Of a stretch of 64,000 nt of DNA, positions 3,513 through 34,677 are shown in pieces (the first letter of the stretch is position 1; each line of letters opens with the position of its first letter). The position numbers were made by a program, and so were the translations under genes. The DNA is from Oculina patagonica (Eukaryota), in contig NC_135762.1 of the NCBI RefSeq assembly GCF_052425735.1, positions 31,310,001 through 31,374,000 on the forward strand. The letters are read 5' to 3'. The notes under the pieces are model-generated. The model made no database searches and was not told the DNA's origin. It saw only the letters and a list, made by a program, of their open reading frames with translations.

Positions 3513-6500
3513 CTAATCATTGCCTTCTAGCATATCCTGTACTGTTCGGTAAGTACATCTGTCCATCTCGGGCCCAATTTCTTTCAATACCTCGTCAACC
3601 AAAGCACGTTGTTTGGGTTGCTGAGAAATGATCAATTCACCAAACAGGTAAATTCCCATTCCCTGTAAAAGAGGATAAAAATGAAATATAACAAGGATAA
3701 ATTACAAAGAAAAACCTTCCATGCAGAAGAAGCCCTTATTACGAACATTTTGGCTGCTATGTACAATTATGTCCAAAAATGAACGCAGTTACGATTTTTT
3801 ACAAATTTTACGATTTTTAGTGATAGTCCATCAGCTGAGATCCGAAAATTTGGGTTCATGGCTCACTTTCGGGGAACAAACGAAACATGTCTTATCTTAA
3901 TCCTTGCCTATTGAGCATCACAAAAATGTATGATAGCAAGGTTGGAACGGTAGCTTTCACTTATAAATCGAATTTTAAATTGGCTCCCCTATCAGGCCCG
4001 ATACGCTCTTATTTGGCCGCCATCTTGGATTTTTGGGGTGAAAAAGCTACAAAGCTGCCTGCATTCTTTTAACGTAAACGAATCGCTTTCAACGCAAATT
4101 TAAAACTTATTGAACTAACAACATGATTTCGTTCATTCAAGTGTTTCAAAAACAACAACGTGATGTCATATGTGACGAAGCCACGGCTGATTTTTACAAA
4201 ATAAAGCAAAAAGTGCAGATTTAAAAATTATTTCACGAAGAAAAGAGAGCACGTAGATAAAATACCATTGCAATTCAAGTGTCTTGAATAAATCCCCTAA
4301 AAAAATCGTCATTTTCCAACCCAGCCCTTATCATCCCGGAAGACTTTAAAAAAGAGGGAAGAGGTGGAAGAAAAGTGAGCTTGCACGTCGTCACTAGGGA
4401 TAGCGGGGAGGAGTTTCAGTCGAGGTGATCAAGAAAAAAAGTCAGCTGCGAGAAGGAGTGATGGGAGAGACAGGCGCCAGGGAAGTGAAGAGAGATACGC
4501 CGGGAAGAGCCAGAGGTTCTCCCACCAGGCATCCACACCGAAGACACTGTCTCCACGCCAAGGGTGGAGACTCTTTCTTCCAACAATCTCTAACTGAGGG
4601 TCTCAAGTTTTACGTTAACGTTTTTTTTTACGGCTAACGGTTAATTTATTTCCATAACGGTTAAAGAAGTTATTAACTGAGCCCTATTCTAACCTTATGC
4701 GTGGACGTAGCTATGTAATTGATTTGGGGTATACTGATATGTGTAGTAACTGAAAAAACGAGCATGCGATGGAACGCCTTTATGGTTTTTATTTTAGATG
4801 ATGAGGAGCAAAAGGAAAACGAGTGAAAAACAAAATGGCGGACATTGCGACCTCATTTATTGCGTACTTTGCTTTTTTACCGTAAACAATGCTAAAATAA
4901 TGTCCCGAATATGTAGTACCTCTCAAATATATATCTAAGCAAAACATCAGTAAGTATTTAAGAACGAATAAAAAAAATTAAGGATTTTTGTTTTAAAATC
5001 CAAGATGGCGGCCAAAAGAAGGACATGAGAGCAAATTTCAAATTCGATTTACACAGTGAAAGCTACCGTTTTATCCTTGCTATCACACATTTTTATGATG
5101 CTTAATAGTCAAAGAGTAATATTAGACAAGTTTCGTTTGTTCCCCTTAAGTGAGCCATACAAGCCCACTAGCTGATGGACTATGACGGCCTCGCGATTTT
5201 TGCACTTTTTGTAAAATTCGAAGTTTCGTCGAGGGCCTACCTTGAACCACATTTTCACTTCATTTTTCTTTTGCGAGTTTTAAAAATTCCTGATTTCCGC
5301 AATTTTCGCCATTTCTGCTAGTTTGTTGCAAAATCTTGTAACTTTTGTAACATTCGTAACTGCGTGCATTTCTGAACATATCTGGCTGTGTACACTTACT
5401 TAGAAATAAATTATAAATTATAAATAAATCATAGATTGGAGCGATTAACATTTTGCTAATCTACACAACGTAAAGAGGTCAAAGGGCACGTATGAGGAAA
5501 CTGTTCTCTTGCTAGAGGGCATTCTCTTGATAAACGGCGCCAAATTCTCACAACATACATTAAAAAAATGTCTTGTATTCAGTTAGGAGAGTTTGTATTT
5601 CGGTCATACCTGATCCTCCACCAAAAACCTCTGAACTTCCTGCAGCCCCGGAGTGTAACTATAAGTATGGCAAGCAAAGATCAATTAAGAATGATAATTT
5701 GTTCTCTGTGTGTGAAACAAAGAGTGAAACAATACATGAGTGCGTAGTGACAGAGCGATACTTACTTGTGTTTTACTACAAGTTCACACCAGCGATGTCG
5801 AATCTGAAAAATTAAACCAACGATCAGCAACTATTAAAAAGCTAGACTGTTCCAGGCTCTTGTTTTTTTCGCTATCCTCCAACTACTGGGGGCCTGGAAC
5901 AGGCTACAAGCGACTTTTACTTACCAGTGAGTTTCGCCCGTGAGATACATTTTGTCACGCAGTATAAAGGGCTTTTTCACGCAATATATTTCACTGTGTC
6001 ACGCCATAAACGAGGTGGTGTGACGCAGTATCAAGTGGAAATCTCACGCTGTTTAAAGTCTTGTTCAACAACGCAAAACATTTTAATTCGACGAAAATCT
6101 AAAAGACAACACTTTAGTGGGATGGAAAACACCAAACAAATCAAGGATGGTTTGAATCGGGAAGATAAAAACTAATTACAAAATTCATTTGGTTTTGACT
6201 TCCAAATAAAAATAGCCACAACAAAATAGTCGGGAAATAATATGACGAACCTCGGCATTTCCATTTGATAAGTTGTAGCATTTGTCCAACTGACGCAGTG
6301 TATTGTGGGAAATTGTCTCTCGTTCCAAAAGCTTTTCCAGCAACAAAACAACTTGTTCAGCAACCTCCTATAATTGACAAAAAAGAAACGAAATTATGTG
6401 AATATCACCAAACGCTCACGACCCGTAAAGGAAACGATATAGAACACGCTGACGTAAACAGTCTTCGGCATTCTTCGGGTCGGCTCGTGTTGGTCCGAAA

Positions 6501-8579
6501 AATGCCGAACATTTCCAAACACGTTCACGTGGTTGTTTAAAACTATTCGAAAACTATTTTTCTTCCTCGAGTTAGCACAAAATAATGCGCAACTGTTTTG
6601 AGTAAAAAGAATATTGAGCCACTTACCAAAGTTCCGCTTGGAGGTTTCTTTCTCTTTCTCACTTTTAGCGTCTTATTCCGTTTGTTAATCATGTCCTGTT
6701 TCTTCCAGGTCTGAAACTTAAAGCAGGATACGCCGTAATTAGATACGAGCTTACTTAACAAATTGAGCGGTATTCTGTGGAGCGCCAGACGAATTTTGTG
6801 TCACTTGCCACCTTGTTTAAGAGAAAATGGGTTTTCACCAAGGTAGGGATCACTGGTTTATAGTTATTTATTGTTATTTATTGTCTAGATTCTAGAATGG
6901 CTGTGCAGAGGACAAGAACTACTTACTAAAAATTTCACAGCAGTCAAAGGCAAATATCTTACGCAGCCCGGTTTTCGCCGCCTCGAACTTTGTAAAAGTT
7001 TGAAGCGAAAATGTGCAAGACTTTTTGTAAGGAAACGTTATAACAATTATTTAGTTTCCTATACTATGCATATGCGGCGTAGAAGGCTTCACTTTTCTGG
7101 CTTCAAAGTGAAAGATTACAAGAAACTTGAAACGCCTAGAGGCAGCAGTTTTGGCGGCGCGCAGTGCGTTTGACCGCTGTGTGACTTAGACTCTAGGTGC
7201 AGCGTATACTAAACTCTATTAAACATTCATACAATAACACCGAACATTTACCGGTGAATTGCAAGGAAATCAGCGCAAAATCGCACAAACGTGACACCTT
7301 GTAGGATCGCATTTTCTGCACTTAAAACCGACTAATGTGTGACAAATTTCTTCCCAAATGTTGCAGTTGCTATATCACATCACAACTTGCTGGGTCTTCG
7401 CGACAATTTCTCCAGTTTTCGGAAATTTGTGTTAAGTTGCGTTAGAGGCTACGTCATTTTCATGGTTTATACTCTCATTGTCCATTGCTCTCGACCAATG
7501 AGCGCGCAAGAAATTCCTCAGTTATTGTATAAAATTGACCAGCGGTTACCACCTACCTCGTTTTCCACTTGTGAGACAAGTTCATTGTCAGGACTGTTGA
7601 ACTTTTTCGGGAAGGACTGGGAACAAATAAAACATTTCAGTTTCATTGCGGTAAGCCAATAATGAAACAAACATCAAATCAAAGTATAACTGCCTTTTGT
7701 AATTACATTTACCAAATTTCACAGCCAATCAGAAGGCAAAATCCACGGGTAATCTATCGACATTTAAGCTCTCCGGCTCGCAGACTGACTTTTTTCTGAC
7801 TGGCCAAACAATGGGGTGTCGAAATTTACACAGCAATGGAAAATTCATAGACCCAATGCAAATATGGCGGCTGTTAATTTTCAGCTCCCAGAAGAATCAT
7901 TTGTCAACAAAATTAAATTACTCTTACTTAAAGATAAGGTCAAAGTAAATCAGTGTATGAAGTTTTAAGGCTATACTTTCATCTAATGGGAAGTTACAGG
8001 GGTATTTATATTGCCAAAAACATGAAAATGAAGCTAGGCAGGCCATGGTGACTTTTTCAACACAAATCTCTTAAATTTGAATGAGTCATAACTTTGCAGC
8101 CATTTAACCCAAAAAACTGAAACTTCTCAGAATATCATAATATTTCATATATATTTAAGTGCCACCATCAGCGGTTTAAGAAACTTGACCAAACAACAGA
8201 AATGAATGACAACTATTTATGCATAAGGTCTCGTAATATTCAGTTAGTCCGTGTCGAGTGGTGCAAGTAGGTCTTGCTACAAGCTCCAACAATCACGATT
8301 TAAAGATCTAACCGTAAATATTGGCCACTCACTTTTGGCAATCCAGCTCTCTCCAGCCATTCACTAACAAACTTGTCCTTCATTTCCCTGAAGAAAAATT
8401 AGCAAGAGTTACAACAGCTATCGGTTAGAAAAGACTTCTTAAAATCTAACGATAAAAGGAGGCTACCCTTTTAACGACTCGCCACAAAATCAGTCTGACC
8501 CACCGTTTACTAAATACTTAACAATTATTCCACGAGCGCACGTTGGATATGAAATGGTAGCGCCGAGTTGGCTATAACG

Positions 8580-8613
<34 letters not shown>

Positions 8614-11600
8614 TTTAATAAAAAACGCCAGAAGAATTGCAATATTTGAGCTCCCCAGCTGTTTTCGTTGACGCGTATTGGCTACCATATTGTGGTCAAT
8701 GGTATATGAGCTCATAAACCATTGCCTGCTAACCAATCAAAACTCAGGAATTGCAATATACCATTGCTATTTTTTAATAACAAAGAATAATTATACCACG
8801 TGACAGATTGCATAACACGTGACAAATGTAAAACACGTGACAGGAAGTCCATACTTTCTCACCTTGGCACATTGGGGAAACTTTCAACAAAGAATACAAA
8901 GAAGTCCTGTGGATAAAGACAAGATGCACAACAAGTCAAATTGGAGTTAAAAGCGAGATTATCAGAGAAATTACTACTAAACGTCGAAGTTGTCGACGGA
9001 CAAGAACATTGCGCTACATTACACAAGCCTTTGTTTACGTTCACTTAATTGCTCATTTTCAAACTTCGTGTCTGTTTCTAACAGTCACGCCCTCGAATTT
9101 CCATGGTTAAATTAACGCCCTGGGAACAACATCGAGTCCATGCCGTATCAATCTGTATAACTGACTTACCTCCGAGGTAACAAGTTGCTCTTTGAAATGC
9201 TGGACATAGTTAAGAAGAAACTCATCAAATTCCTCAAGTCCCACCAAGTTGGCCATGTGATGAAGAAGAAAGTACCCCTGGAGAACAAAATAGGGTTGTA
9301 TTAGGTGTATTTGATTGGATGCTGGCTGGCTTGGTTAATCGAACGAAGTGAGGCAAAAATGAGTGCTTAAATTTTCTAGTTCTCTCAAAACCAACTTCAG
9401 TGTAACCCCGATATAACGATATCCCGAGGGAGCAGTAAAATTATATCGTTATATCGAGGAATCGTTATATCGACACTTCTGATATAACGATATGGCCGTA
9501 AAATAACCGAAAATATCGTTATATCGGGGTAAACCTAACAAGTACTTTTTACTGCATATTAAAGGAGATAAAGAGAATAATTTTGATAAAGAGGCTTAGA
9601 ATACAGTATCATTTTCGTATATCATCGTACAAAGCTGTTTACAGAAACGTTAGAGATCACTCAATAACTGTAGTGCTATTGCATTAAATACGATGTTTTG
9701 CAAATAAATTGTGACTGTGTACTGATAATATCGTTATATCGGGAGGATTTTACGTTCGGTACGCTAAATTCTCATCGTTATATCGGGAATATTGTTATAT
9801 CGAAGATCGTTATATCGGGGTTCCGTCCCATACATTTTACTGTAACTTTTGCCGGGACAAAGAATATTCATCGTATATCGGGAATATCGTTATATCGAGG
9901 ATCGTTATATCGGGGTTTGGCATTATCAAGATTTGTAAGCCCGTGTACTCAACTTCTACTTCTTAATGTAATTTTCACAGTGACACTGAAATATAAAATT
10001 AAATTTGACTAAGAATCGTACCTTGTGAGCAAACCATATTTTTACTTGCCTATAAAGCCTCGCTTGCCGTTTGAAAGGGTTTAAGTCGTTTTAAGGAGCT
10101 ACATCACGGGGATTTTGCAGATTTTTGGTCTAAACTGTTCAGAATTTAGTGGTAGGTAACTATTTCCATTAAAAAACCTTTATCTTTGAACATCCACTGG
10201 ACGATATAACCTTAATTTGCGGATAAAAATTGAAACTACCGCTAGATTTTTAGTCAAAGAAGCAGTAACTATGGGATAGATTTTTTGAAGACGCGCAGAG
10301 GCAACTTGAAAAGTTTAGCTTAACTTGTATGAAAGTGTCATTAAAATGCCCGAAAATCATCCTTGTTTGTTATGTGGCCGTGATTTTGCCAATAAAGACT
10401 TCTGCTCTGCCAATTTGAAGTTTAGAGCTCTTAAATAACGAAAATATGTAAAATAACCTAAAATACCGATAGACAAACCTTGAGGTAGTGAACTTGAGTC
10501 CATTTTCTGGAGCAGATTTGACCAAACTGTACCACAGTGTGAGGTCTGATGGTGTCTGACTGACCAGAGCTCTTCTCTACTGCTTCAGCCGCGGAAAGAG
10601 CTGCGAAGGGAAGCAGGAATAAGCTCGATCAATGGAGTTCAAATTAAGCTTGAAGACAATACGCCATAATAACAAACTGAGCAAAAATTCGTACCTGACG
10701 CTGGTTTAACCACTTTAGGCCTGCATTACAATGACAACAAAAACATTTGCTTTAGTTTTGTAAGTAAACAAATCATTATTACACTGTCACAGACATCGTA
10801 AGGGTCATGGGTACGAAACAAGTCGAGACGTAGATTTTCTCTTTGCTTCTTTACAACGGCTAGATACAATCGACGATTGCAATTTTAAGACCACTTTAAC
10901 TTGTGTTGTTTACGCATACGAGTCTTTTTNNNNNNNNNNNNNNNNNNNNNNNNNNNNNNNNNNNNNNNNNNNNNNNNNNNNNNNNNNNNNNNNNNNNNNN
11001 NNNNNNNNNNNNNNNNNNNNNNNNNNNNNNNNNNNNNNNNNNNNNNNNNNNNNNNNNNNNNNNNNNNNNNNNNNNNNNNTGCTAACAATACAATCAGTTC
11101 TATCGAAGTGAAGGATAGCCTGCGTGGCAGGCGTCGTTAGTTTCTAGCGCGCGTATGGGAGAAACGCGAAAGGCGCGAGAGGGCCACGCGAGGAAAAAAT
11201 CGAGAAGATTCTCCTCGATTTTTTCCTCGCGCGGCCTTCTCGCGATCGCGCACTCTTTTACGCGCGCTAAAAACTACACAGACGCCTGCTACGCAGGCTA
11301 AGTGAAGGATAGAGAAAACATTCTGGGCTCTTACAAGCGCTCGCACTGCCACCCCTACGCCAAACCCCACGTTAACCCTTAATATGCTGAAATAACTTCA
11401 AAAACACGTTTTTTAACCTTCAAATTGATTTTTTTGGCGCTACGGTGCTAAATTCTTCTAAACTTTGCTAAATTTGTGCTTTTTGACATTGCAGTAAGTT
11501 TTTGATGAAATTTCATGTAAAAATGTACAATATTTTACTTATTGCTGAACCGTTCCGAATTTTTTTCTTGCTCTTTTCCTTTTCGTTTTTCTCTGCTTTC

Positions 11601-14600
11601 TTGTTCTCTCTATCTTTTACTCTGTGCACCCCTTCTACTGGCCTTAAGAGTTTCGATCTTAACCAATGGAAAAGCCTGGAAAGGAGACCATGATCAAGTA
11701 CGGGTATATTGGCCCGTTTTAGCACCAATTTTACACCAAAAACTGATCACGTTTTTTTTCGATTTGCTCTGTCGGAATGCCGTCAATTTTCAAGATGGAC
11801 AGTCCTGTGGAAAGATCTATCCAAGCTCTATTAGTCGCACATCACAAAAATCTGCTGACGTCTAAATTGGTGACGTCACAAGTGGTTGAATGGCCATTCC
11901 TTTAAATCCCGGAATAATCCGGGCTTAGCATATTAAGGGTTAATTTATTACCTATATGTGTACGTTATTCTTAGTCACTATGAAGAAGACAGATAATAAG
12001 ACTGAGAAACAAAAGCTTGTCAATTAGTGAATATTGTCTTGTTGTGCCACCAAAGAAATGTCTGGTAATTAGAAAAGAGGATTAATATTTCCTGCTCGGG
12101 ATCGGCCATGCCTCCTTACCTCAAGTACTTAAGACTGTCATCACACTCTCTGATTTCAGACAACAAACATCTGTGTCTGAGAATTTGTCTCATCTCCCGG
12201 TAAAACCTGTCCTTATCTTTGGACCACTAAAGAGAAAAAAAATTAACCAAAATCAGCAAACTACAGATTAGACAAGTTTGTCCACATGCTACATAGAACG
12301 GTTTCCTGAATGCCACAAATTTAACCTCTGCGCCCTACCCGGGCAAGGAATTTTCAAGTTGGCAAAGACAGCCAAGGCGGGGAAGAATGGTGGCGAGAAA
12401 GAATTCTGAAACAAAACAGTGGAGATGAGTACTCGAAACAAAACTAGTGAAGTCACTTTTACTTTTCTTAAGCTCGATTTTGTTGCTCCATGCTGTCTTC
12501 CTACCCGTGCTTTGAGAGAAGGAGCGAGGGCTTATTTATGATCGAGCCCAGTTATTCCCTTACTGTGTGCAACAAAAGTAAAATGTCCACACACCCTTTC
12601 AGCCTTGGATTGAATCTTCTCCTCTATGAATGTCGCAAAGCCTTCAGACAGCCACTCTTCGCTCCAGTCTTTTGCGCCAACCAGCAAACCGAACCAAGCG
12701 TGTGATATCTCATGTGCCAGGCGCACCCGCATACTGGCGTCACCGGAGAGAAGGGACTGGGACAGAAACACGAGGTTGGGACTTGAATTCAACAAAAACA
12801 CAAACAAAACTAATGAGATCAAATTCTCAACAACAAACATTATTAGAAGTGTATAACACTACGTAAGGAGAATTACGATTTCGATCTCTGGACACTCTCT
12901 TACCTTTTGAGCCCCATACAAGCGAAACACTTGGGTAAGACCAACATATCCAAGCGTCTAAAAGGATACGGACCCAATAGCTCACAAGAGGCCTCAAGAA
13001 ACTTCGGTGCGTATCCTAGCAACTCGTCTGCCGCACTGTCAATCAAACTGGGCGGGGCAAACAGACGGCACGTGACAGGCACGTCGGGGTTACCGCCATT
13101 TTTCGTTTCAGCGTTTCGTGACTGTCTGCACCGCCACCAACCCACTGCTACAGCCAGAGTGGAACAGGGCAAAGGAGAATCCATTTCATAGTGGAAGGTC
13201 ACTGAAAGGTAGGAAGCATGGTGTTTTATTTTCCTAATCAAAGTCAGTTGGATAAATTCTTTCATGCAATCTCGTGCAGAGGAGTATCGCATCTCTACGG
13301 CACCTTCTTATTTTTAAAGTGGCGTTCCCATAGTTACTGCTTCTCTGACTAAATACCTATTCGTTTCTATTTTCGCGAGCCGGTCACCATTTTGGTTTTT
13401 TTTTTTTTTTAAATTTTTTCGGGTATTTTGGGTTTAAAAATAATTTTTTTTTTTTTTTTCCCCTTTTTTTTTTTTTTTTTCCAAAAACTTTCAAACAAAG
13501 TTTCTTTTGACCCAGCCCATGGCTATAACAGGCCGATTTCGGTATATTTTAAAATTCTAACTAGACTCTGAAGGCAGCTAAAGGAAACATTGAAAAAGGA
13601 AATTTAAGAAACTTTTATTGATCCCTTGCAACCCCAACGTGATTTCTTTTTGTAACGGATATTTTTTTTTTTTGCCAACTTAGCATTTTAATACATTCTG
13701 AGGCTTATTACAAAAGCAGTTCGATTTTGCTTTGGTTTTGCATTACTACGCTTAGTGATTGGCTCTAAAAACCCGCACCACTTTCTCAGCCAATCAGAAG
13801 TGAAACCAAGACCAATCATGACTTGCTTGCGCACGTTTTCCCGCGCTTCGTGCCGGCTACATTTATTTGCTTCGAGTTTTGATTGGTTCACTGAATTGTC
13901 TGGGCCCTTTGTGATTGGTCAGAGTGATTAACTTAGTTCTGGTTTTACGACACTCAATTGAAAACCGCTCTATGACACAAATAATGATCAACCAGAAGAC
14001 TCCCCCAAAGAAGATCGAAGCTTACCTTGACCATCACTTCCAGTAGTTTTGCCAACAAACTCGTTTCCACTCATCAGCACAACACAGCCCTCTGGCACGT
14101 GAATAGACGCCTGCCACGTTGACATGGCAACAGGCGGCTCCTGACACGGCATTAGAGATCGATTGTTGATGTATGCACCGGGTGAGAATACAGATGGTCT
14201 GGTACAAGGAAAAATCGAATTACTCAATTAATCATTTCATTCTCAAGGGGGGATCTACATCTATTTTGTTCCCTAATTTTTTTTTTTTTCAAAGTCAGGC
14301 AGAAAGCCAAATGTGACAAGACAAAGAAAACCATAAACCAGACGATGTTGTCTTTTCGGCGTGGTGTCTTCTCTGTGCCCGATTTCTCACCATTTGCTTT
14401 AATTGTTCGACGAACTTATAAGATTGGCTCAGGGTATGACGTGACCTTTACCGTAAAAGCTCTACAGTCGAACCCCCATTAAGCGGCCAGTTAACCCTTA
14501 CTTAGCGGCCACCTCTGTTAAGCGGCCGCGGCCACCTTTCGCTCGTCCGATGAGGATTCGTATTGTTTTTACCTCAGTCTGTTAACCGGCCACCAAGAAT

Positions 14601-16193
14601 TTAATAAACGTAGCTTGGCCTTGCTTTTGTAGTCTGATGACAGATAAGAGTAAAAAACTGGAAGTAACGAGTCGTTACTTTCAGTTTTTTACTCTTATCT
14701 GTCATTAGGCTACAAGCGGAATATGTTTGAAAATTTTTATCAGTCATCGACTGATAAAAATTTTCAAACACGCTTATTATCGTCTTGACGTGATTTCGTT
14801 GTCACTAAGCTAAGTGATGACCTTTTGATTTCCTGACAATAAAGTGATGTTTCTACCACGCCTTATGCCAATTTCAGACGAACTCTTATTAAGCGACCAA
14901 CCTCTATCGACCACTTAAAGGGACTTTGTCACAGATTTTTAGCTAAATTTACGGGTATGGGAAATGCCCATCAAATTCGTTGAAATATAAAAAAAAACCT
15001 CTCAAAACAGTGAAGGAACATGTCAATAACACAGCAAATACAAAAGAAGGTACGGATGGCCAAAAGTGACGAAGATTGAAACGGATTGCGATATGGATTT
15101 TTATAATATTGTTGGGCTGAACAGTTTTCAAAGTCAACCTTGTTTGCTTGTGACTTAAAATTATAACGCCCGAGAGACTCATTTGGTTGCAATGAAGCTA
15201 TGGTTTTATCGTTTAGGTCCATAGAAGTATTTTTGGGAAGGTTCATAGGTTCATAGGGAACATAGGGAATATTTGGCAAAGCTAAATAAAATAAACTTTT
15301 TAACTCAGCCGTGACACAATCCCTTTAACATTTCCCCAAAGGCTTTGTACTTACTTGCCGTCTTGATCCGTTGCCCATGTCAATGAACTTCCTTCTGGAC
15401 TCGTGTGATACTTAATCCACACGCATCTGGGCCAAGCTTTCCCGGTTGCATCAGGTTTCGAAATCTGCACGCACCACCCATGCACAGAATACGACAGCCC
15501 CTTGAATGGCAAAGGAGTATGGGTCTTATCACCAAGGATGTTACCAAGGAAACCGTTTTGTACCCCGGATGAAGATGTTTCTTGCGTCAAAAGGCTGTCT
15601 TGTCTTTGACCCAAAAATGACACTTCAAAGTCTTCAGGCAGGAAGACTTCACTCACTGATTCGATGTTCACCAATGTACTGTCTAATGCCATTTGAAATG
15701 GCTTTTTTGTCACATCCTCGTTACGAGGTTCAAGAAATAATACAATATTGCCCTTCATAATTTTTTCGCTAAATTTGACAGACAGGTCTAAGATGTAGTG
15801 ATACACCAGAACTTCATCGACATTAGCCATTAATGGCAAGTCATCGCTTTTATTCCAGTTTGTGTCAAGAGGACTTTTAGTTCTACTGTTGCATTCAGAA
15901 TCAGATTCATTTCTCAGCTTCTTTGCAGAAGTTTGTTCAACATCTCCAGAATTATTGATTGACAACGACCTTTTCCTGTCAAAGGCATCTTCACTTTCAA
16001 TCTCCATGTCTTTATTTACCTCAGTTGCAAATGCATTCATAGCCTTAGATTGAGCTTCTTCAACATCACCAGAATTATCGATTGACAACGACCTTTTCCT
16101 GACACAGGAATCTTCACTATAAATCTCCATGTCTATATTTAAATCTTCAGTTACAAACGCATCTATGTCCCTTAGATTGAGCTTCCTCAACAT
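3513..16193 (-). CDS. AOPEP: Aminopeptidase O (M1 zinc metallopeptidase), 16 exons, ~820 aa from the first in-frame ATG (true start uncertain)
   Basis: GT-AG exons with consistent phases and no stops: 16193-15355, 14198-14026, 13201-12904, 12781-12595, 12226-12120, 10720-10695, 10600-10479, 9277-9170, 8906-8863, 8387-8333, 7616-7557, 6710(or 6716)-6627, 6367-6251, 5803-5766, 5658-5610, 3662-3513 (TAG). Motifs typical of AOPEP: DDLPLMAN..HYILDL, INNRSLMPCQEPPVAMSTWQA, CMGLKSP in place of GAMEN, HEISH-x18-E zinc site (12714-12700), QVHYLKGYFLL, basic KVRKRKK segment, RHRWCELVVKH, EDQGMGIYLFGEL. Confidence 0.93.
3823..5183. mobile_element. Non-autonomous DNA element with ~200-bp imperfect TIRs (ATAGTCCATCAGCT...AGCTGATGGACTAT) in the last AOPEP intron
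   Basis: 3823-~4035 is the diverged reverse complement of ~4993-5183. The interior holds unrelated GC-rich and MITE-like fragments. Confidence 0.8.
9398..9918. mobile_element. MITE with many ATCGTTATATCG subterminal repeats
   Basis: Starts cagtgtaaccccgatataacgat and ends atcgttatatcggggttt; the motif recurs more than 8 times in both orientations. Confidence 0.75.
10930..11079. other. Assembly gap (150 N) inside an AOPEP intron
   Basis: Run of n. Flanking exon phases are compatible without requiring a hidden exon. Confidence 0.99.
11116..11300. mobile_element. MITE TAGCCTGCGT...ACGCAGGCTA, 9-bp TSD
   Basis: Long internal palindrome; TSD agtgaagga at 11107-11115 and 11301-11309. Confidence 0.85.
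11372..11943. mobile_element. piggyBac-like MITE (TTAA-CCCT...AGGG-TTAA)
   Basis: TIR cccttaatatgct / agcatattaaggg, flanked by TTAA at both ends. Confidence 0.8.
13712..13972. mobile_element. Short interspersed MITE-like repeat
   Basis: Repeated gattggt/ccaatca motifs and imperfect terminal inverted ends (aagcagtt.. / ..aaaccgctcta). Confidence 0.55.
14463..14914. mobile_element. TA-CAGT MITE with ttaagcggcc subterminal repeats and two internal hairpins; right end cut by a TTAA element
   Basis: Starts tacagtcgaaccc; repeated taagcggcc; hairpins at 14627-14715 and 14724-14770. Confidence 0.65.
14915..15328. mobile_element. TTAA-flanked element (Kolobok-like ends AGGGA..GTCAC / GTGAC..TCCCT)
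   Basis: ttaa-agggactttgtcac ... gtgacacaatccct-ttaa. Confidence 0.75.
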
Positions 16194-16305
16194 CACCAAA
16201 AGTGTCTTTCGACGACCTTTTCTTGGCACAGGTTTCTTCACTAACAATCTCCATGTCTTCACTTTTTTCAGCTACAAACGCATCTGTAGCCTTAGATTGA
16301 GCTTC
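15935..16305 (-). repeat. Three ~120-127-bp coding-type tandem repeats (EAQSKAxDAFVxE..DMEIxSE..KRSLS..GDVE)
   Basis: Anchor cttagattgagcttc at 16291, 16171 and 16044. A +1 insertion at ~16170 breaks the frame between units. Confidence 0.85.
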
Positions 16306-17009
16306 CTTATCTTCCATAATCTCAAACAAATTCCTGTACGTATATGGAATAGCCTCTGTACTGTTCTCAGAATCAGAGTTAGATTCAATTTGTTCATGTT
16401 GAGAAGTGCCTATGTATCCACTAGTTGCATCTTTGCAAACAGATTCTGGCATATGTGTTGAAGGAACACAAGCAGTTTGCTTAGAACTTTCCAAGTTCCC
16501 GGGCTTGTGACCTTTCCGAGTCCTTTCCTTACAGCCTTTCTTCCCCTGGCAATTACCGGGGGCAGCTTGGGAAGCCGAGTCTTCAAAGGTACTATCTGTT
16601 GGGCTCCATCTGCTTCTCTTCCATCTCATCTTGATCTTTACAAAATTTTGTAAAGTTCTGGAGCCATCTTTGGAATGGCGTGTTAATTTCATCGTCAGAT
16701 TTAGTCCCTGACTGGCTTAAACCGGTGTTATTGGTTTTCTTGCTCTTCTTTTCAGTCTTCTTTTTATTCTTCTTCTCTCGCTGCAAGGGTACATCCGTTA
16801 CAACTGTGCCAAGAGTTGAAGATTGCCCCTTAAGACACGTGACATGATCTGGTTCCCCGTCATGCTTGCCTTCAACAGGAACTAAATTCACTGCATTTCC
16901 TTCAACCACTGGTGTGCTTGCATTTGTCACAGCGGTGCTGGTGATTGAGGACGAATTCTCATGATAGGTTACATGCCCGCCGGCTCCTGGTCAAGCTCAC
17001 TTTCATTGC

Positions 17010-17645
17010 TGACTAGTACTCAAAGAACTCCCATCTTCCGCTGACAACAATGCAACATCTTCAAAGGGGCTGATGGCTGAACATGGCTTTGCATGACACA
17101 TCACATCAACTGCCTCCACTTTAAGTTGATCTTCATCAACAGCAAGTTTAATTGTACTTGCTTCCACCTTTGGCGAGATTGCATGTTCATTAACTGGACT
17201 GATGGCGGAAGATGGCTTCGCATAAGAAGTTAACCAATCTAGCTCCTCATCAAGCCTGTCTTCTCCATCCACCAGGTTCACATTACTTTCTACTTCCCGT
17301 AGAAAGCTTGTATCTTCTTCTACTGGGCTAATAGTTGCACATGGGCTGATGATTGAAGATGGCTTCTCTTGGAAGGCTACATGCAGTGGCAGATCACTGA
17401 GCTCAGTTCCATCATTGGCTAGTTTTGTAGTGCTTTCTCTCAGCTCTGGAAAGCTTGACTCTTCCCCAAGTGGGCTTAAGACTGAAGATGGGCTTGATGT
17501 TTGAAGATAGCTCCTCATAACACGGTCCGCAGTTTGACCCCTCGTCAAGCCTGTCTTCGCTATCACCCACACTCAATGTACTTCCATCCGCTCCTGGCGA
17601 AGTTAAACCATCTTGCACTGGGCTGATAGCTGAAGATTGGCTGAT
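17010..17645 (-). repeat. About five degenerate ~43-49-codon repeats (PSSAISPV...EDRLDE)
   Basis: Recurrent gggctgat..gaagatggc motif; peptides SSAISPVQ, SSVLSPLG, ATISPVE, SSAISPVN, CSAISPFE. Confidence 0.7.
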
Positions 17646-18646
17646 GGGTGTGTTATTGAACATTGACCCACCATTGTCCTCAATCCCGACTGAAGAGCTT
17701 GTAACTGCCATCACTGTACTGATAGTAGTTGAAGACTTCTCATGGCCTGTTACACCACCTAACTCCTCGTTGCCTGTGAAGAGTTTCCAATCCGAGTTTG
17801 ACACACCACTGTTGCCATTTCCCTCTGAAAAGCTTTGCATCCATCATAACTGCTCTGGTTGTCGAGAAGGTTTTGTCATAAAACATGACTCCATCAGGCT
17901 CTTCATTTCCTGAAAACATTTGTCATTGGACACACAAATGTGTCCACCATCCATGTTGAATGATTCAGCTGAACTTTCACCTTGCGTAGTTTCCCATTCC
18001 TTTGTGAGTAAAGCATTGTTGGAAGAAGGGTCTGCTTCTTCACTTGGCGCAGTGGGTTGCACGTCACCACTAGACGGACCAGCGTGAATACCTTTCCCGT
18101 GAACAGATTCCAAAGTGTTTCCTTCAATGGAAGTTGCGTGGACACCTTTTGGAAATGTCCCAGTTGTGGAAGTGTACCTTACAGGGTTTGATGCTGGTGA
18201 AAGCAAATGAAGTCCACATTTCCTACTCAAGCCTGACAGCACGTGACAAGTTTCCATGTACACTTCTTCCAATGTCCAGGATGACACGCCATGAGAAACT
18301 GGCTTTTTGCTGTATACAGCTGCAACACAACAAAGCCAACTAAGAGCACTTTTCTGACGAATTTCGAAAATAAATTTCAGTTTTAATTACTCGTATGTAA
18401 TTTACTTAGTTTAAGACAAGCCATGTCACCAAATTTTAAGTCATTTTTCTGGTGTACATAAATTTGTTGTCAAATTGAAGGGAAACCTCAAAATAATAGT
18501 TTTCCAAGTTACATAAACACCACTGAGAAGTATTAGAAGCCGAAAATAAACAAGGATGGTTAGGAATGAGGAAAGTTAAGACAGATTACATGCGACAAAC
18601 TTGCAAAAATTGACCATTCTCTAACTTAACTTAGTGTGTGGGAGGC

Positions 18647-19020
18647 TCCACCGCGGTCAAACAACAGAAATATGCAAAAAATAAGAAAAGTACTGCAAAG
18701 ATAAGGTTTTAATTTTCACAGTTCAAAGTTCGATACATAACCGGTATCCTAAGGGTTTACTAAGTTTTTTGGAGCTTTAAGAAATAAAGTTCTACATGTT
18801 TGAAAATAGCGATAGACGGACTTGTCGGCGCCATTTGTCAAAGCACCTTTGGTTCGGATGTGAAACATTTAAAAAGTAAAAACACTGGTTTACCTGAGGG
18901 AATGGGATTATGCTTTCACTCGGCAATTATTTTTATCTATCTTGCTCGTAACTAACACATAATTTGAAAAAAACGGTGAAATGGAAAGAAAACCTGCCTG
19001 AGACGTTTGACCGCGGTGAA
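18647..19020. mobile_element. TIR element (TYCACCGCGGTCAAAC ends) with 5-bp TSD GAGGC, inserted in a SINE head
   Basis: 16-bp inverted ends; gaggc at 18642-18646 and 19021-19025. Confidence 0.7.
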
Positions 19021-19344
19021 GAGGCATGGTGGCCTAATGGTTAGCACGCTGGACTCTGGACTGGAGGGGTCTGGGTTTAAGCCTTGACCGGGGTCATGTG
19101 TTGTGTTCTTGGGCAAGACAATTAATTACTCTCATAGATCCTCTCTCCACCCAGGTGAATAAATGGGTACCAGCAAACTAATGCTCAGGGGTTAACCATG
19201 CGATGGACTACGACCTCATCCAGGGCGGAGTATAGGAACAATCCTAGTTGCTTTATGTTACAGAAACCAGGATAAGCTCCAAGCCTGTATCGACCACTTG
19301 GCTCAAAGCAGAGTTCACCTACCTACCTACCTACCTACCTACCT
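19021..19344 (+). mobile_element. tRNA-derived SINE with (ACCT)n tail
   Basis: A-box-like tggcctaatgg head, conserved body tgttcttgggcaagaca..ccacccaggtg..aaatgggtacc, (acct)7 tail; same family as 31283 and 21828. Confidence 0.8.
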
Positions 19345-21827
19345 AAAATAGAAGAATAGTTTATCATTTTACCTGAAGGAATTCCTTTACCAGCTAACCT
19401 ATTGCCGTTCTCGCCAACAGCAAGATGGATCATATACAGCAACACAGGAAAAGATGCAGAGCAGTTTCTGTTTTCATTTTCAACCAGCCCCGTCACGGCA
19501 AGATGACTGTCAGAGGATGTCTTTCCCACCCTGTTTTCAGAGGCATCACTACCCTGATTATCTTTGAGCCTGTTCTTGATCACATATGCTTGCATCGCTG
19601 TGACATGCTGGAGATGTACTCCATAGCAAATGTCACCAGCCCTGTAGTCATTCCAGTCCTTTACAAGCTTGATAAGCTCCAAGGTAGGTCTTGAAAACAT
19701 GGGCCCTAGTGCTACGAACAGAACTTTATGATGTATCACAAGGCAAAAGATCCAAATGGTTCTTTAGTGACTCTTGCTGGAGAGTGGTCTCCCTGTGTTG
19801 CATTCGTATAACCATGTACTCAAACTTCACATCAGAGGCTTTTCGTGTTTGAAGATTTGCCACTATTGCATCGGCTAGAGCAGTGAATGATGCAGAATGC
19901 CTGGAATTGTCAGGTCTCTTATGATGGTGTACCAGGACATTCATCTTGAACAAGAAAAACAACCCGCATTGACGACATGACCAAGCCAGGTGGAGTGACC
20001 TAAATTTGGAATTTAAAAACCACATGTAACCTTCAAAGGACTTATGTCATTATAAAGATACTGATCTAGTGAACTGTATATCTTTGAAGGTATACTATTG
20101 AATTGATCTTTACTGCCACATCACCAGCTTTTCATTCTCGTAAGCCCTATTGCCACATAACAATCTCATCTTACCTCTATTAAACGCCGGGCCCTGAATA
20201 AACGCCGGGTCTCCTTTTTAAATAAACCCTTAAACATTTTATTTTTTTTAAAAATAATTTAATATATTCTTCAAAAAAAAAAAGTTCTAAGAAACGATCA
20301 AATAAATCTTAAATAAGGTTTGGGGTTTTGGGTTTATAAATTGGATTGTTATTCACTGATGATCCAATTGTATGCAAGACAAATAAATTGACAGTTTGCA
20401 AAAAAAGTCCTGTCCCATAGCCTGGAGTGAATGGATTTTCCTGTCAGGCTGGATTTTATCTATCGCTTGCCCAATGGACAAGTAACATTTCAGACTAGAT
20501 TAGACCTAGACCTGATTAGATTAGACCTAACAATTATATAAGAATACGCAAGGCCACCTCCCCATCCCACCCCAACTTACTTCCGTTCGCTCTGGAAATA
20601 AAAATGAAAGCCCTTATACATGTACCTGATCTTCTTTGCCTTCTGTTAAAAGCCTTTCATCCACATTATCGCAGCCCAGGAACCCCAAGCCCATCTCCCT
20701 CGCCAGGTCTGGAAACCCCTCAGAGCATGCTCTGTGTACTGCATCCCTTAGTCTTGTACCACATGTACCAGAAGTTATGCTGGGGACCATGGTCGAAAGC
20801 ATCAAGTGCAGATCAGCAACCTGGGAACCAGTCTCATAAACTTCTTTTGTACTGCCGCACAGAATAGAGTGTAGTTTTGTCTTCAACCAGTTTGCATCTA
20901 CTGGCCAGTCCTGAAAAAAGAAATGGCACTTGAGGCAAATTTGACTTTGCTTGACAGGCCTAGATAAATTTTCATCCCTAGAATCCCTACCCTAGAGGTC
21001 ATTTAATACACATGAAGCCACAATAAAGGGGGAAGGGTAGGGGGGGGGGGGGGGGGCAGGAGTGTCTGAACTTCCTGCTGTTATTTTTATATTACCGGTA
21101 GCTTGTGCTGCTGATGTTACAGTTAATCAACTTCAAGTTAACAGTTAGCTAACAAATTCTTTGAGCAGCCAGTATCAAAGAGAAATCTTTGCTTCAAATT
21201 TTTGTAGAGAGAATTTATCATGCTCCACATTTTGGGAGAAGGAAATCATTGCTCCATATTTGCAAGACAACTAAAACAAAATCGACCAAACACATTACAG
21301 TTGAATATACTACATCCACTTTTATTTATCATACAATTTTAGCATAACAAAAACACAGACTTACTGCGTGAGAACAGTCTAATTTCAACGTGAAACAGGA
21401 TGAGATGTGGGTAGCCATGAGCACATCCTTCAGCACACTCTGGCAAGCCATCACAAAGTCATGCAGTGAACAAAACTCTTCAAATCCAGCCTGTTTTCCA
21501 ATAGCAAATGGAGTACATGCGAACACTTGACCTTGGCAGCTAGAGTGACAGCTCAAGACTGTGACGACTTCAACTGTTGGAAATGAATGGGGAATGAATT
21601 CAGTTAATGTGAGAATTAGGAAGGTAATCATAACTCTGAGGTATACTGTCTGAATCTGAAAGACATGGTGGCCTTATTAAATCTGATTAAAATCGTGACA
21701 TAGTCCCTTTTAGTGCATTAGGCCCCCTTAGGTTAAGCCTAGCCTAGGGTATTGTCTTGTGTTCTTGGGCAAGACATAAATATTCTCACAGTTCCTCGCT
21801 ACACCCAAGAGTACAAATAAATGGTGG

Positions 21828-22128
21828 GTTAAGTCTGCATTTGAGCTTACTGACCAATCAGGCTGGAGCTTATTCTGGTTTCAGTAGCATGAAGCAACTA
21901 GGCATATTTCTACTCCCCCTTGGATGGGATCCTAGTCCATCACAAAGTTACCCCCAAGCATTAATTCACCAGTACCCATTTATATGCCTGGGTGGAGAAA
22001 GGCACTGTGAGACTCAGAGTATAGTGTCTTGCCCAAGAACACAACACAATGACCCCAGCCAGGGCTCGAATCCAGACCGCTCAATCTGGAGTCCAGCGCA
22101 CTTACTATAAGCCACTGTACCTTCCACA
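21828..22128 (-). mobile_element. tRNA-derived SINE, reverse orientation
   Basis: Reverse complement of the SINE body at 19021 and 31283; a short forward fragment lies at ~21750-21820. Confidence 0.75.
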
Positions 22129-22368
22129 GGCAAATTGTCAGGGTAACCTGCTGGGGGATATCTGCACTGTACAAGCACATCACGCTGGAGTCACCATGTT
22201 ACAGAAGCCATGAGGGTTCAGTGCTAGCTGGCCTGGTGACCACGCCTTCATGCCAAGTGGTACAGAAGGCCATCCTTCCTCATTCCTCTACCCATTTCCA
22301 AATTTGGCAAGGTTAAACCTGCCAGGGACTTGCCTAGACGACACTGATAAGCACAGTGCTTCTCCCAA

Positions 22369-22622
22369 TACAGTAAAAACCCACGAGTAAGAACCTGCAT
22401 TTTCCCAAGTTAGCCTAAACAGGTGTCTCCAAAGGGGATCCAGAATGCTAACTTAAGTCCCTTTTTCCCCTAAAAATAAACATTTTGAATTGATTTTAGA
22501 AAATAAGAACCTATTCCCAAATTGTAGGCTAAAAAGGTTCTTATAAAGAGGGTGTCTAACTGGCAAATTTTAGCCTAACAGGTTCTTAAAAACTAGGTTC
22601 TTACTCGCGGGTTTTTACTGTA
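22369..22622. mobile_element. Tc1/mariner-like MITE (TA TSD)
   Basis: ta-cagtaaaaacccacgagtaagaacc / ggttcttactcgcgggtttttactg-ta. Confidence 0.85.
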
Positions 22623-23681
22623 TCTTGAAATGGAACCGAGCCTTACATGCACCAATCTTAACAATTGTCTGGATCCCACTAGTAACTCTCAGAAAGAAAA
22701 GAAGGAAAAAAATTAAGAGGAGTTGGACTTGAGAATAAAACCTGAACTCACATACCTGTCGGCCAGTGACTGTTCAGGAAGTTCAACTTTGCGATACATT
22801 CCATCAGTTCCTGACGGCTTACAAAGTTCTGAGTGATGACCACACAGTCGTTTTGTTGAGTTCCTGCATATTGGAGAATATTTTTATTGTCAAGAATTGT
22901 AGTTTAAACTATTTAAAATAGTTGAAATGTTCAAAAAATTACAGTTATGTGTAACAGGCTTCCAAAGTTTCCCATTAATGTCCAAACCTCTCAGACTCAA
23001 TACAAATTAATCAACAGGTATCATTTCTGAGAAAGTAAATTGCCCTCAGCCTTAAGTGAGCTGGACACTTTGCCCTAAAGGTTTTCACTGTCCACATAAA
23101 AAAATCTGCTCCTTGATCATCATTTATTACGGTTTTCAGTGAAATGCAAACTCTGAAATTCAAAATCCAACAAACGATTGCGTTTTTCGCTGCCAACAAT
23201 CATAATTATGGCAACTGCCAACGAACAATGACAAAAAGAAACAAACAAAATGGATCAAGATCTACCAATCACAACTGACAGACGTGACCTTTTGACCTGG
23301 TTGAAGTGAACTTCTGTTTCCCAAGAGGTCCGCTAAGATGATATATGGCAGCAAAAAACGTAAAGCGGTGGTCGAGGATTGTATTTCAGAGTTCGCATTT
23401 CACTGAAAACCGCAATAATACCTTCAGCCATAAATGCAGCCTCGAGAAACAGAGACATCCAATCCCCAAACTGAGATTGAGGATCTTTGAGGTTGAACAC
23501 AGCGAGGACCTGAAGCCACAAAAATATAATAAAAAATGCAACTTATGAGCTAATGTCAGCCAGGCATAAAGCAACATTTTTAAAGTGTTGTTATCATGAA
23601 AATGTCACAGATGCACATATAACATCAAATACACATAGGCAAAGGCAAAGTCGAGTCAGAGGAATAATGGGAACATTGTAG

Positions 23682-24170
23682 TACAGTTGAAGCTCTCGTA
23701 AGTGGATATCTTTGGGATGCGAAAAAAGTGTTCATAACTAGAGCTGGCCGCTTAAGAGAATGGTTCTCATGAGCGGCTACTAGAGGTGTAGGGGATAGAT
23801 GGCCGCTTACGGGAGCTTGCCCGGCTAAAAATAAGCAGACAGACTTGGGTGATGGTAAAACCAAATACTGAAATATGGTACTGTAATTACTGTAAAATTA
23901 AATCATCAGTGAGGAACGGCGATGTGAAGTTGATTGATAAAAACAAGATACAGAGGTTGTGAATAGGATTTCTTTGGGGTGTCCACTTATGGGAGCTTAA
24001 AAACAAAGAAAAAGTCTCTGAAAGTGTCCGTGGCCGCTTACGGGAATGTCCGCTTATGAGAATGTAAAAATACAAAGTTTGTATGGGAGTTAAAACAGGG
24101 TTTCAAACAAGGCGGCCGTAAGTAGAGTTGTCCACTTACGAGAGTGTGCGTTAAGCGAGCTTCGACTGTA
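23682..24170. mobile_element. Tc1/mariner-like MITE (TA TSD) with ggccgcttac repeats
   Basis: ta-cagttgaagctc / gagcttcgactg-ta. Confidence 0.8.
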
Positions 24171-26464
24171 AATGTGTTACCTTTCTAGTTCCTTCAGGCA
24201 GGCACTGATTTTCAAGAAAAACCTCACTTTCAACATAATGAGCATTGGTCTCCTGATCATCTGTTCCAGAATCCACTTCTTTCATGTAATGGTGGACCTC
24301 TTTACCAACATGTCTCTCAAGAACTTTAACATTCTTCAGCGTGTTAAGAAGCCAGCAACGCTTCCCTGGAAAATTAATCCACCATTTCCATCAACAACAT
24401 CAAGTTTACGACTTTGTGGCATGCGACAAGGTTTACAACAGGCCTATGGCACGAATTGTGTCATATTAAACAAACCTACAACTCGCTTACAATTTTAGCC
24501 AATTTTGAGTCAAGGTTTGGGGTGAGCTTTTCATCAGCACATAAATCTGTGAAACAATATACATGTAACTCTGGGGAATATACCTTTCTCTGTGCCCCCG
24601 GGGTTTGAAATTTGCACTAGACTAATAACTTTTAGTTATTATTTTAGCTATAAGAGTATCTTATTGTCTTACCAGTAGATTACAAGTTTGTAGGAAAGAA
24701 ATAACAATGGTTTTCTCTAAGTTTGCTGAATCATGGTAAGTCAGACAGCTAAGACATGCATGTGAAGCTACAAATCAGAGCCATACAAGGGTGTGAGGTA
24801 AGGAAAATATTTACTAACCTCTCCTCCAGCCACTAGAGATCTATATATTTAGTACCCCTCTTAAATGATAAGATGATAATTGTATTTACTAGGCATAAAT
24901 GTATAAAATAGCCCACTCCTACAAATTAATTTATTATCTATACAAATTACACATCACATGTCACCCTAGGCTACTGACAATACCTTGCAAGGCCTCTGCA
25001 TGTTGTTTGCACTGTGGAAAGTCGCATCTTATGTATCTTGAGTCCCCAGAAGTGTCAAATGCAAACACATTGCTGGGGAACCGTGCAAGAAGTTCCTGTG
25101 TCTGAAGGTATAATCAAGACAAATTCATCTCCAGATTACATGTCCAAATCATAGCAGCAGGAAGATGCTAGCTAGTTTTACTATTTTGGTCATTCCACTT
25201 TATGTTCATCTCTGTTCCTTATGCATGATATACCAACATCACTATTATCACTGATGCTTCTTCCCCACCCCCACCCCCACAGTGTTCCTTAAACAATAAC
25301 ATTAATAGGCCAGAGGAGAGGGAAGGGAGCAGACCAGGTAAAGACAGGGGATTTGATAGAAATTGCATGCCTTTAGCGGGGACTTTTGACCATTTTAGTG
25401 GACTTTCTAACAAACTTTTACTGAAGTTTAGTGACTTTTTTGACCATCCACAAATATCCTGTGGTGGGGCATCTGAACTGAAAATCGCAGCTAAGCTCAA
25501 ATGCCCCTCCTATGCCTGGCCTGCTCCCCTGGCTTAACATTGATAGGTGCATTAAACACCTTTTAAGAAACACTGCCAGCTCAGCTCCTTCATTTTGCAG
25601 AGGATTCACATCAACAGCAAGATAATATTGGGCTATTGCATTTAATATTGGCACCCCCCCCCCCCCCCCATAAAAAAAAATTCTTTTTGGCTTGAATTTT
25701 TATATTCAATTTTCATTACGTTTAATGATGGGTTTTTGTGGAATAAAAGGGTGTTATTTTATTCCAGTGGGTATTTAAGGGCTAACATTTGGCTCTGTTT
25801 GAGGCCTTCTTGTCGTTTTTTCCTTCACAAAGGTTATACCCCCCTAGGGAGAAGGTTATACCCCCCTAAGGAGAAGTTCACATCCAATATGGCTACTCTC
25901 ACAAGGGAAATTTTTAGGTCAGATTGTGCTCAGGAACCGTGTATTTTACACAGAGGATAGCATGAAATACTGCTGTGAGGTTTCCAATAAGAAAAAACCC
26001 TGCGCCATGTCTGTCCTGAAAACAGATGTAAATTCAGCTACCTACGTGGTGAATAATATCAAGGACGTGCGATGTGACAACATTTGATTTTTGAAAATTC
26101 AAGATAGAGTATGGGAAGATGCAGAACAAGGCAGAGATAAGCCAAGGGGCGTTATAATTGGATTTTAGTAATAAAATTTCAGATGGTTTCTGATAGATAT
26201 AAAACACCGCGATTTTTTACTAATAAAGGCTTCTTCGATCGCGAACGAGGTACATGTGACATGTCACAGCTGACAATTCTACAGTACATGTGATCGGAGA
26301 GGGAGTAAAAAGCGATATACGGTGATTTGAAAAGTGTGATTTTCAGTTAAAAGGAAGCAAGACAGATCAACAAAGTTTCTGCATTCGAAAAGAAACGTGG
26401 CATCCCTTACCTTTGCACTTATTCTGCTATCTTCTTTTTCCGCTCTCTTTGTTTGGTCCGCCAT

Positions 26465-26540: not shown

Positions 26541-34677
<8,137 letters not shown>

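Follow-up and report, generated by a model that had tools for sequence, protein, structure and literature searches.

A minus-strand gene for an aminopeptidase O (AOPEP)-like protein was found in the 64,000-nucleotide (nt) stretch of the Oculina patagonica genome analysed here (contig NC_135762.1, positions 31,310,001 to 31,374,000; hereafter the window), and in this protein the peptidase is preceded by a long N-terminal module (N-module) and a linker. Judged by sequence comparison, the locus is the coral ortholog of an ancient aminopeptidase O-like gene of cnidarians and sponges and not a new or recent chimera. The core of the N-module (about 230 amino acids, aa) is likely to adopt a caspase/CHAT (clan CD) fold, as structure prediction indicates. 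To this reading as a whole, an ancient cnidarian/sponge AOPEP-like gene with an N-module of predicted caspase/CHAT fold, we assign a probability of about 0.75. The encoded protein would begin with a short CCCH-type putative zinc knuckle. Next would come the caspase/CHAT-like domain of about 230 aa and then a second alpha/beta domain, from which a disordered Ser/acidic linker, encoded without an intron in one giant exon together with the start of the peptidase, would lead into an M1 aminopeptidase O with an LTA4H-type C-terminal domain. The sequence-only reading of the same DNA had proposed a fusion of GREB1-like modules to the peptidase.

Single proteins with the order N-module, linker, Peptidase_M1 and Leuk-A4-hydro_C were recovered from sponges and cnidarians by phmmer and profile searches. 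These searches were word-seeded and covered 5.8 billion proteins at lengths of about 690-2200 aa, a range that includes GREB1. P0093, a complete transcript open reading frame (ORF) of 1256 aa from the sponge Oscarella pearsei which contains both halves, served as the bridge. Fused proteins were present in a second sponge, Oscarella lobularis (labelled "aminopeptidase O-like"), in Nematostella vectensis (LOC5513554, 2051 aa), in Stylophora pistillata (XP_022800692.1, LOC111338453, 1904 aa; also PFX19236.1, "Aminopeptidase O") and in Actinostola, Dendronephthya gigantea, Clytia hemisphaerica, Hydractinia symbiolongicarpus, Rhopilema esculentum and Sanderia malayensis. A whole protein of 1297 aa was encoded by Logan RNA contigs (about 4.1 kb) of Hydractinia type. 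Since both halves occur in single proteins of Oscarella and of cnidarians, the architecture is common to sponges (homoscleromorph) and to all sampled cnidarian classes (anthozoan, scyphozoan, hydrozoan). Fused orthologs as single ORFs, for which the sequence-only reading had suggested a search, therefore do exist. Its idea of a gene fusion was right in that a conserved N-terminal module, linker and AOPEP form one transcription unit, but the arrangement is not recent. Nor is the architecture new to the databases, as had been supposed, because predicted proteins of this kind are already public, most of them under the label "aminopeptidase O-like". The gene models are public; the module itself is unannotated. 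Literature searches returned no paper joining AOPEP to a caspase-like or GREB1-like domain, nor one joining a CHAT domain to Peptidase_M1.

In the window the gene extends from an ATG at 26464 to approximately 3516, and all splice sites that were read are canonical. By tblastn the window follows the Nematostella and Stylophora proteins collinearly, beginning at residue ~16-18 and ending at their C-terminus, and the last AOPEP exons are 62-95% identical to the query proteins P0196 and P0197. The peptidase is identified as AOPEP by the HEXXH-X18-E motif, by the DDLPLMAN motif and by a Peptidase_M1 match above the gathering score (12858-12535, covering HEISH...E; E = 3.9e-12, 46.7 bits against a cutoff of 27.7). 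Apart from this match on the catalytic exon, Pfam scans of single window exons gave nothing useful, and the last exon alone, which is too short, had no match. All orthologs scanned with hmmscan possessed PF01433 and PF09127 and lacked any Pfam match in their first ~540 aa. The sequence-only reading had correctly noted that no TET/JBP-associated glycosyltransferase (TAGT) domain is present: the orthologs end with PF01433 and PF09127, and the window is collinear with them to its last exon. The linker varied in length from about 45-50 aa in Oscarella up to 3139 aa, while its richness in Ser, Glu and Asp was constant.

RNA evidence came from Logan contigs of three runs (X1, X2 and X7; coded organisms A, B and C) and from one raw poly(A) run, examined over positions 14020-20019. 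Each of the three contig runs contributed one contig with the junction from 19373 to 18319 (minus-strand GT..AG, 1053 nt skipped), so the proposal that upstream exons splice into a canonical acceptor at 18319 was borne out. The donor at 15355 had also been placed correctly: it is canonical, and the matches of two RNA contigs stop exactly there. Between these two sites RNA depth was even (about 20, 50 and 5 in the three runs) and similar to that of exon 10 (14020-14219), whereas depth in the intron at 14220-14419 was zero. Exon 8 resembled exon 9 in depth in X1 and X2; X7 had no depth at exon 8. DDLPLMAN, at 15845-15822, lies within the same exon downstream of the Ser/acidic linker, just as had been read. 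Taken together, the junction, the even depth over exon 9 and the contig ends at 15355 indicate that transcripts cover the upstream exons, the linker and AOPEP.

It might be argued that the window holds two neighbouring genes joined by read-through, with a promoter of AOPEP's own somewhere within 16.2-18.3 kb. The climb of X7 depth from 5' to 3' over the locus would fit such an arrangement, as would a hydrozoan intron-retaining transcript (L005) that would give an N-module-only product. In X1 and X2, however, depth is flat over exons 8-10. Moreover, the frame is open from the module via the linker into AOPEP in L001, a contig of a relative in the European Nucleotide Archive (ENA), and in the corresponding exons of ten other relatives. 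Both halves occur in complete transcript ORFs of Oscarella and of Hydractinia-type runs, and in no relative do an intron or a stop separate them. We therefore consider two separate genes very improbable.

In L005:333-2222, a Logan RNA contig from a hydrozoan-like run, a retained intron stops the ORF about 90 aa past the N-module, and the tail runs through an AAG|GTAAGT donor; the transcript would encode the module alone and may be an alternative isoform. P0200, an N-module-only protein of 629 aa, was considered as a stand-alone gene and rejected because its tail runs into the GTAAGT donor, which identifies it as intron retention.

The nature of the N-module was addressed by alignment and structure prediction. 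When 8-12 sequences from sponges and cnidarians were aligned, they shared the invariant blocks CHSSxQGQVFSxT, FEEFCSLHD, HxSSCF, WPV, GSxxEVYETGSQ and PDLxxEMGL, and an N-terminal C-x10-C-x4-C-x2-H motif was conserved as well. One His and one Cys were invariant in 12 of 12 sponge and cnidarian sequences. The AlphaFold model of the whole module (predicted local distance difference test score, pLDDT, 72; predicted template modelling score, pTM, 0.79) had two alpha/beta domains and, ahead of them, a small beta element at the N-terminus. With this model, Foldseek and VIA-align returned mostly generic matches to two-lobe periplasmic binding proteins (PBP) and dehydrogenases at template modelling (TM) scores below 0.3, and the scores of an ESM-Atlas feature search (≤0.70) offered no more than a lead. 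Because the generic matches swamped the whole-module search, the first domain (P0093 residues 92-325, about 230 aa) was modelled alone, which gave a pLDDT of 86.5 and a pTM of 0.87. Caspase/CHAT folds were the best match of this domain in four independent structure searches. In the PDB, the best 50 Foldseek matches were all of caspase fold (the SAVED-CHAT structure 8tl0, MALT1, caspases 3, 6, 7 and 8, and a coral caspase). The ESM-Atlas shape search returned DUF6642, CHAT and caspase-3 clusters (TM 0.58-0.68), caspase p20 and CHAT entries led among the AFDB clusters, and the language-model neighbours were DUF6642, CHAT and Peptidase_C25 (score 0.91).

The invariant His and Cys would occupy the positions of the clan-CD dyad, and from this we infer that the module may be catalytic. 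In the domain model, His (H173 of P0093) lies 2 residues past strand 74-80 and Cys (C223) 3 residues past strand 124-129, placements that follow from strand order in the model. The likeness to clan CD (caspases, MALT1, metacaspases, CHAT 8tl0, DUF6642) would lie in a predicted alpha/beta/alpha caspase-hemoglobinase fold in which His follows one strand and Cys the next. In contrast to members of this clan, the module shows no similarity at the level of sequence profiles (hidden Markov models, HMMs) and has the motifs CHSS and SSCF in place of SHG and QACxG. The putative domain also differs in its setting: a CCCH knuckle precedes it, a second alpha/beta domain follows it, and it is joined to an M1 aminopeptidase in one polypeptide.

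Several points weigh against the reading of the module as a clan-CD domain in an expressed AOPEP gene. Neither the Pfam caspase (Peptidase_C14) nor the CHAT HMM matched the module at E≤1, and a comparison of the domain profile with PDB chains by sequence returned nothing at E≤10; the fold assignment therefore rests on predicted structure. Raptor has a caspase fold and is not known to have protease activity, so that the fold does not imply proteolysis. Finally, the RNA runs carry coded organism labels and diverge locally from the window by 0-8%, and for this reason they inform on the expression of relatives or other haplotypes and not necessarily on that of the haplotype in the window.

Alternatively, the N-module may have a caspase fold but serve as a non-catalytic scaffold or recognition domain which targets or regulates AOPEP, in the manner of Raptor and c-FLIP. 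The protease-like domains of both these proteins appear among the structural matches of the first domain, and the module is not a sequence-profile member of the active families. On the other hand, the invariance of the His, the Cys and the motifs CHSSxQGQVF, HxSSCF and EVYETGSQ from sponges to corals exceeds what a scaffold would usually need. A scaffold is a tenable alternative which we hold to be somewhat the less probable.

The relationship to GREB1 proposed by the sequence-only reading fared less well. In the published description (PMC7968844), GREB1 combines a Zn-binding domain with a superfamily 2 (SF2) helicase, inactive and circularly permuted, and a glycosyltransferase. In the coral protein no positive identification of any of the three was obtained. 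It was suggested that the N-terminal and central modules of GREB1/GREB1L had been fused to AOPEP, with the peptidase replacing the TAGT glycosyltransferase. The two proteins do share an N-terminal Cys/His-rich segment followed by alpha/beta domains. The anchors VVITQN, ETGSQVADL and ASFTALADAI, on which the comparison was based, fall in real exons; they are partial matches of 6-10 residues. Two further anchors out of the five are wholly or mostly not coding sequence: AGFFLIG lies at 26003-25983 in intron 1, and most of VVDGNGGLIFQGKRCW is read from the exon-3 acceptor, namely from its polypyrimidine tract and AG. The reading VVDGNGGLIFQ is likewise intronic and lies upstream of that acceptor. 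Pfam-A includes GREB1 models, and when window pieces, homologs of exon 8 and 11 orthologs (full-length or long) were scanned with hmmscan, no GREB1-family match appeared (E≤1; E≤0.01 in one scan). Only AOPEP-like proteins, and no GREB1, were returned by the word-seeded phmmer and profile searches in the length range given above. GREB1 and GREB1L were absent from the best 30 Swiss-Prot AFDB matches of the whole module, a weak negative because caspases are missing from the same list. No SF2 or RecA helicase was listed among the best matches of the domain model, to which the GREB1 model itself was never aligned. The fold evidence favours clan CD and not SF2. The proposed GREB1 fusion appears unlikely, and so does a very remote relationship of the module to GREB1.

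As large metazoan proteins with a Cys/His-rich N-terminus, an alpha/beta centre, a low-complexity linker and a C-terminal enzyme, the coral protein and GREB1/GREB1L are alike in outline (for GREB1 by description; PMC7968844). They differ in that the C-terminal enzyme is an M1 peptidase in one and a TAGT glycosyltransferase in the other, and in that the central fold is predicted to be caspase-like in the coral protein and SF2-like in GREB1. The coral protein also lacks a detectable sequence-profile match, in comparisons that included no GREB1 sequence directly. A GREB1 label for this locus, tempting as it is, is unsupported and is corrected here.

The part of the gene in which the window departs from its relatives is exons 8 and 9. 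Exon 8 (19373..19999, minus strand), which encodes the second alpha/beta domain of the module, had been read as 19373-20146; tblastn places its start at 19999 and divides it among three frames; the +1 insertions responsible lie near 19916 and 19729. With P0001-P0004 as queries this split was seen in the window only, and exon 8 is a single ORF of about 200-230 aa in 39 relatives. The giant exon 9 (15355..18319, minus strand) codes for the final helices of the module (SSWTLEEVYMETCHVLSGLSRKCGL), for the linker and a tandem repeat, and for the initial ~165 aa of AOPEP, counted from DDLPLMAN. The linker part has a high content of Ser, Glu and Asp and includes a K-rich stretch and an NTPFQRWLQNF motif. 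In proposing an exon of about 2965 nt that runs straight into AOPEP, the sequence-only reading was right that there is one transcribed exon; within the window it is not one open frame, since the reading shifts to another frame near 17495, 16596 and 16169 and is interrupted by in-frame stops at 17846-17844 and within 17005-16991. All five +1 insertions and the in-frame stops lie between 16169 and 19916, a patch of 3.8 kb.

In L001 (76-90% nucleotide identity to the window) exon 8 is intact and the giant exon is one open frame of 869 codons from acceptor to donor. A phmmer search of 1.84 billion representatives yielded ten more ORFs of this exon type (869-3371 aa), all with the same AOPEP donor at their end. 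The exon is open in other corals as well. RNA contigs likewise lack extra bases found in the window. The base at 16596 is missing from the contigs of all three runs. The base at 16169 is missing from every X2 and X7 contig; X1 has C>G there and an unplaced second gap. At 19916 the base is missing fully in X2 and at half depth in X1. The gap counts of the RNA contigs are compatible with missing bases near 19729 and 17495, and one X1 contig with 1 mismatch in 315 nt is still one base short across 17495.

We consider that the frame breaks in exons 8 and 9 are probably a local sequence or assembly error. The other explanation, that the gene is truly broken on a haplotype with frame-shifting insertions in these exons, has a substantial though lesser chance of being correct. 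On such a haplotype a full-length protein would be impossible, and AOPEP could at most be made either by translation from a Met within the repeat region (16.0-16.2 kb) or by use of an internal promoter; the locus would then be an incipient truncation resembling the bilaterian form. Five uncompensated +1 insertions and stops in 16169-19916, against none in about 2.1 kb of AOPEP coding sequence, speak for a broken allele. Two of the three insertions inspected lie outside homopolymers, and at 19916 X1 apparently keeps the state of the window in half its depth. Against a broken allele, exons 1-7 (1047 nt of the same supposedly dispensable half) are free of lesions, so that the lesions group by position and not by function. 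All five net changes are insertions, a bias which is unusual for natural mutation and common among long-read consensus errors. The extra base at 16169 is a G in a GGG run within the middle copy of a tandem repeat, and RNA contigs lack the extra base at 16596 (all contigs), at 16169 (X2 and X7) and at 17495 (the one near-identical X1 contig). A 61-mer around the 16596 insertion matched no sequencing run, in a search that sampled only 2 words; the same site used as a pattern had no match in JGI metagenomes. Exact-product look-up of four window ORFs, in search of an independent assembly of the same species, found none on record. The frame breaks in this patch of 3.8 kb should not count as pseudogenisation before a check against reads.

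The tandem repeat itself (15936-16305) consists of 3 x 123 nt (41 codons; units of the form EAQSK...DMEI.SE...KRS...GDVE) and occupies the stretch of the linker immediately ahead of the AOPEP domain. Roughly two units of it, about 247 nt, are absent from L001. The linker tolerates extreme expansion: the giant exons of two further relatives (P0051 and P0068) are single open exons to the AOPEP donor with still longer linkers, one of 1745 aa with ~19 tandem repeats of ~50 aa and the other of 3139 aa.

AOPEP is a poorly understood nucleolar M1 peptidase that is linked to human dystonia. The C-terminal ~700 aa of the coral protein are orthologous to vertebrate aminopeptidase O (AOPEP/C9orf3, M1): the DLPLMAN start, HEXXH-X18-E, Peptidase_M1 and Leuk-A4-hydro_C are shared, and the two are collinear to the last residue. 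The difference lies before the motif, where the coral, other cnidarians and sponges have a structured module of ~540 aa and a long disordered linker. Many AOPEP-type proteins in the phmmer survey begin within ~20 residues of the DLPLxAN motif, as does human AOPEP, which suggests that the 5' part was lost in bilaterians and that their AOPEPs are 5'-truncated derivatives.

How the two halves might work together can be sketched as follows. Tethered to the aminopeptidase, the N-module would act as a cysteine endopeptidase or else as a substrate-binding head of pseudo-protease type. The head might cut substrates and AOPEP trim the resulting new N-termini; alternatively the head might cut the linker and thereby release or regulate AOPEP. 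The tether would be long, disordered and probably nuclear-targeted, given its K-rich stretches and conserved NTPFQxWLQNF motif. Tentatively, the ancestral animal AOPEP may have been a two-protease enzyme in which an unrecognised clan-CD family with a CCCH knuckle was active on AOPEP substrates or on the linker. Sponges and cnidarians would have kept this form, and it would have disappeared at the base of Bilateria; we would put this whole reading at somewhat less than an even chance. A conserved module outside Pfam, with a predicted caspase-type fold and a His/Cys pair, provides a concrete hypothesis on the ancestral partners or substrates of AOPEP. It would also extend the short list of animal caspase-fold proteins by a new family.

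The remaining coding exons, all on the minus strand, were located as follows. Ahead of the giant exon 9, homology (tblastn) supports eight coding exons and not about 11 as previously counted; exons 1-7, when spliced, form an open frame of 349 aa (1047 nt). Exon 1 (26411..26464) starts with the ATG at 26464 (MADQTKRAEKEDSRISAK) and has its donor GT at 26410, and its N-terminus matches Stylophora XP_022800692.1 (MADQTVRSKGED...). Exon 2 (24984..25101; found with P0197, canonical AG/GT) contains the C-x10-C-x4-C-x2-H motif (FAFDTS...RCDFPQCKQH), a putative zinc knuckle. Exon 3 (24181..24365; GKRCWLLNTLKNVKVLERHVG...) was found with P0196 and P0197 and its splice sites were read. Tblastn and splice sites likewise defined exon 4 (23422..23509; VLAVFNLKDPQSQFGDW...), which carries the first strand and helix of the caspase-like domain, and exon 5 (22756..22863; DCVVITQNFVSRQELMECI...). 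Exon 6 (21365..21573), 86% identical to Stylophora, encodes both the invariant His (VLSCHSSCQGQVF) and the invariant Cys (THISSCFTLK) of the putative clan-CD dyad. The caspase-like domain ends in exon 7 (20626..20910; DWPVD..., GSTKEVYETGSQVADL, FPDLAREMGL), for which tblastn, splice sites and the alignment agree.

Downstream of the giant exon, exon 10 (14026..14198; PSVFSPGAYINNRSLMPCQEPPVAMSTWQA...) is the second AOPEP exon, with 77-91% identity to Nematostella and Stylophora, and the M1 catalytic exon with HEISH...E (HEXXH-X18-E) lies at 12595..12783 (94% identity to Stylophora). Collinear tblastn matches of P0196 and P0197 gave the approximate positions of the other AOPEP exons: 13202-12906, 12226-12119, 10610-10479, 9283-9170, 8389-8333, ~7600-7557, 6719-6627, 6367-6242, 5806-5768, 5663-5610 and 3665-3516. 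The frame is intact in all remaining AOPEP exons (3516..13202). A run of 150 N at 10930-11079 falls between the exons at 12226-12119 and 10610-10479, apparently without loss of a coding exon.

Interspersed repeats occupy intronic positions 14820-15300 and 18620-19220, and related copies are found at 21757-22128 and 31262-31557. They resemble short interspersed elements (SINEs) and share the reading KQLGIFL...CPRTQHN.... In each of the three contig runs their word depth in RNA contigs reached thousands and chimeric joints were numerous; they are highly expressed or very high-copy elements outside the exons of the gene. Upstream of exon 1, a comparison of 27069-29213 with L001:126-2801 revealed several short blocks conserved at 76-93%, which may represent a promoter, an untranslated region or a neighbouring gene. 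Farther away, a single-exon ORF of 163 aa on the minus strand (47391-47882) belongs to the BTG/Tob family (Pfam BTG, E = 2.4e-40).

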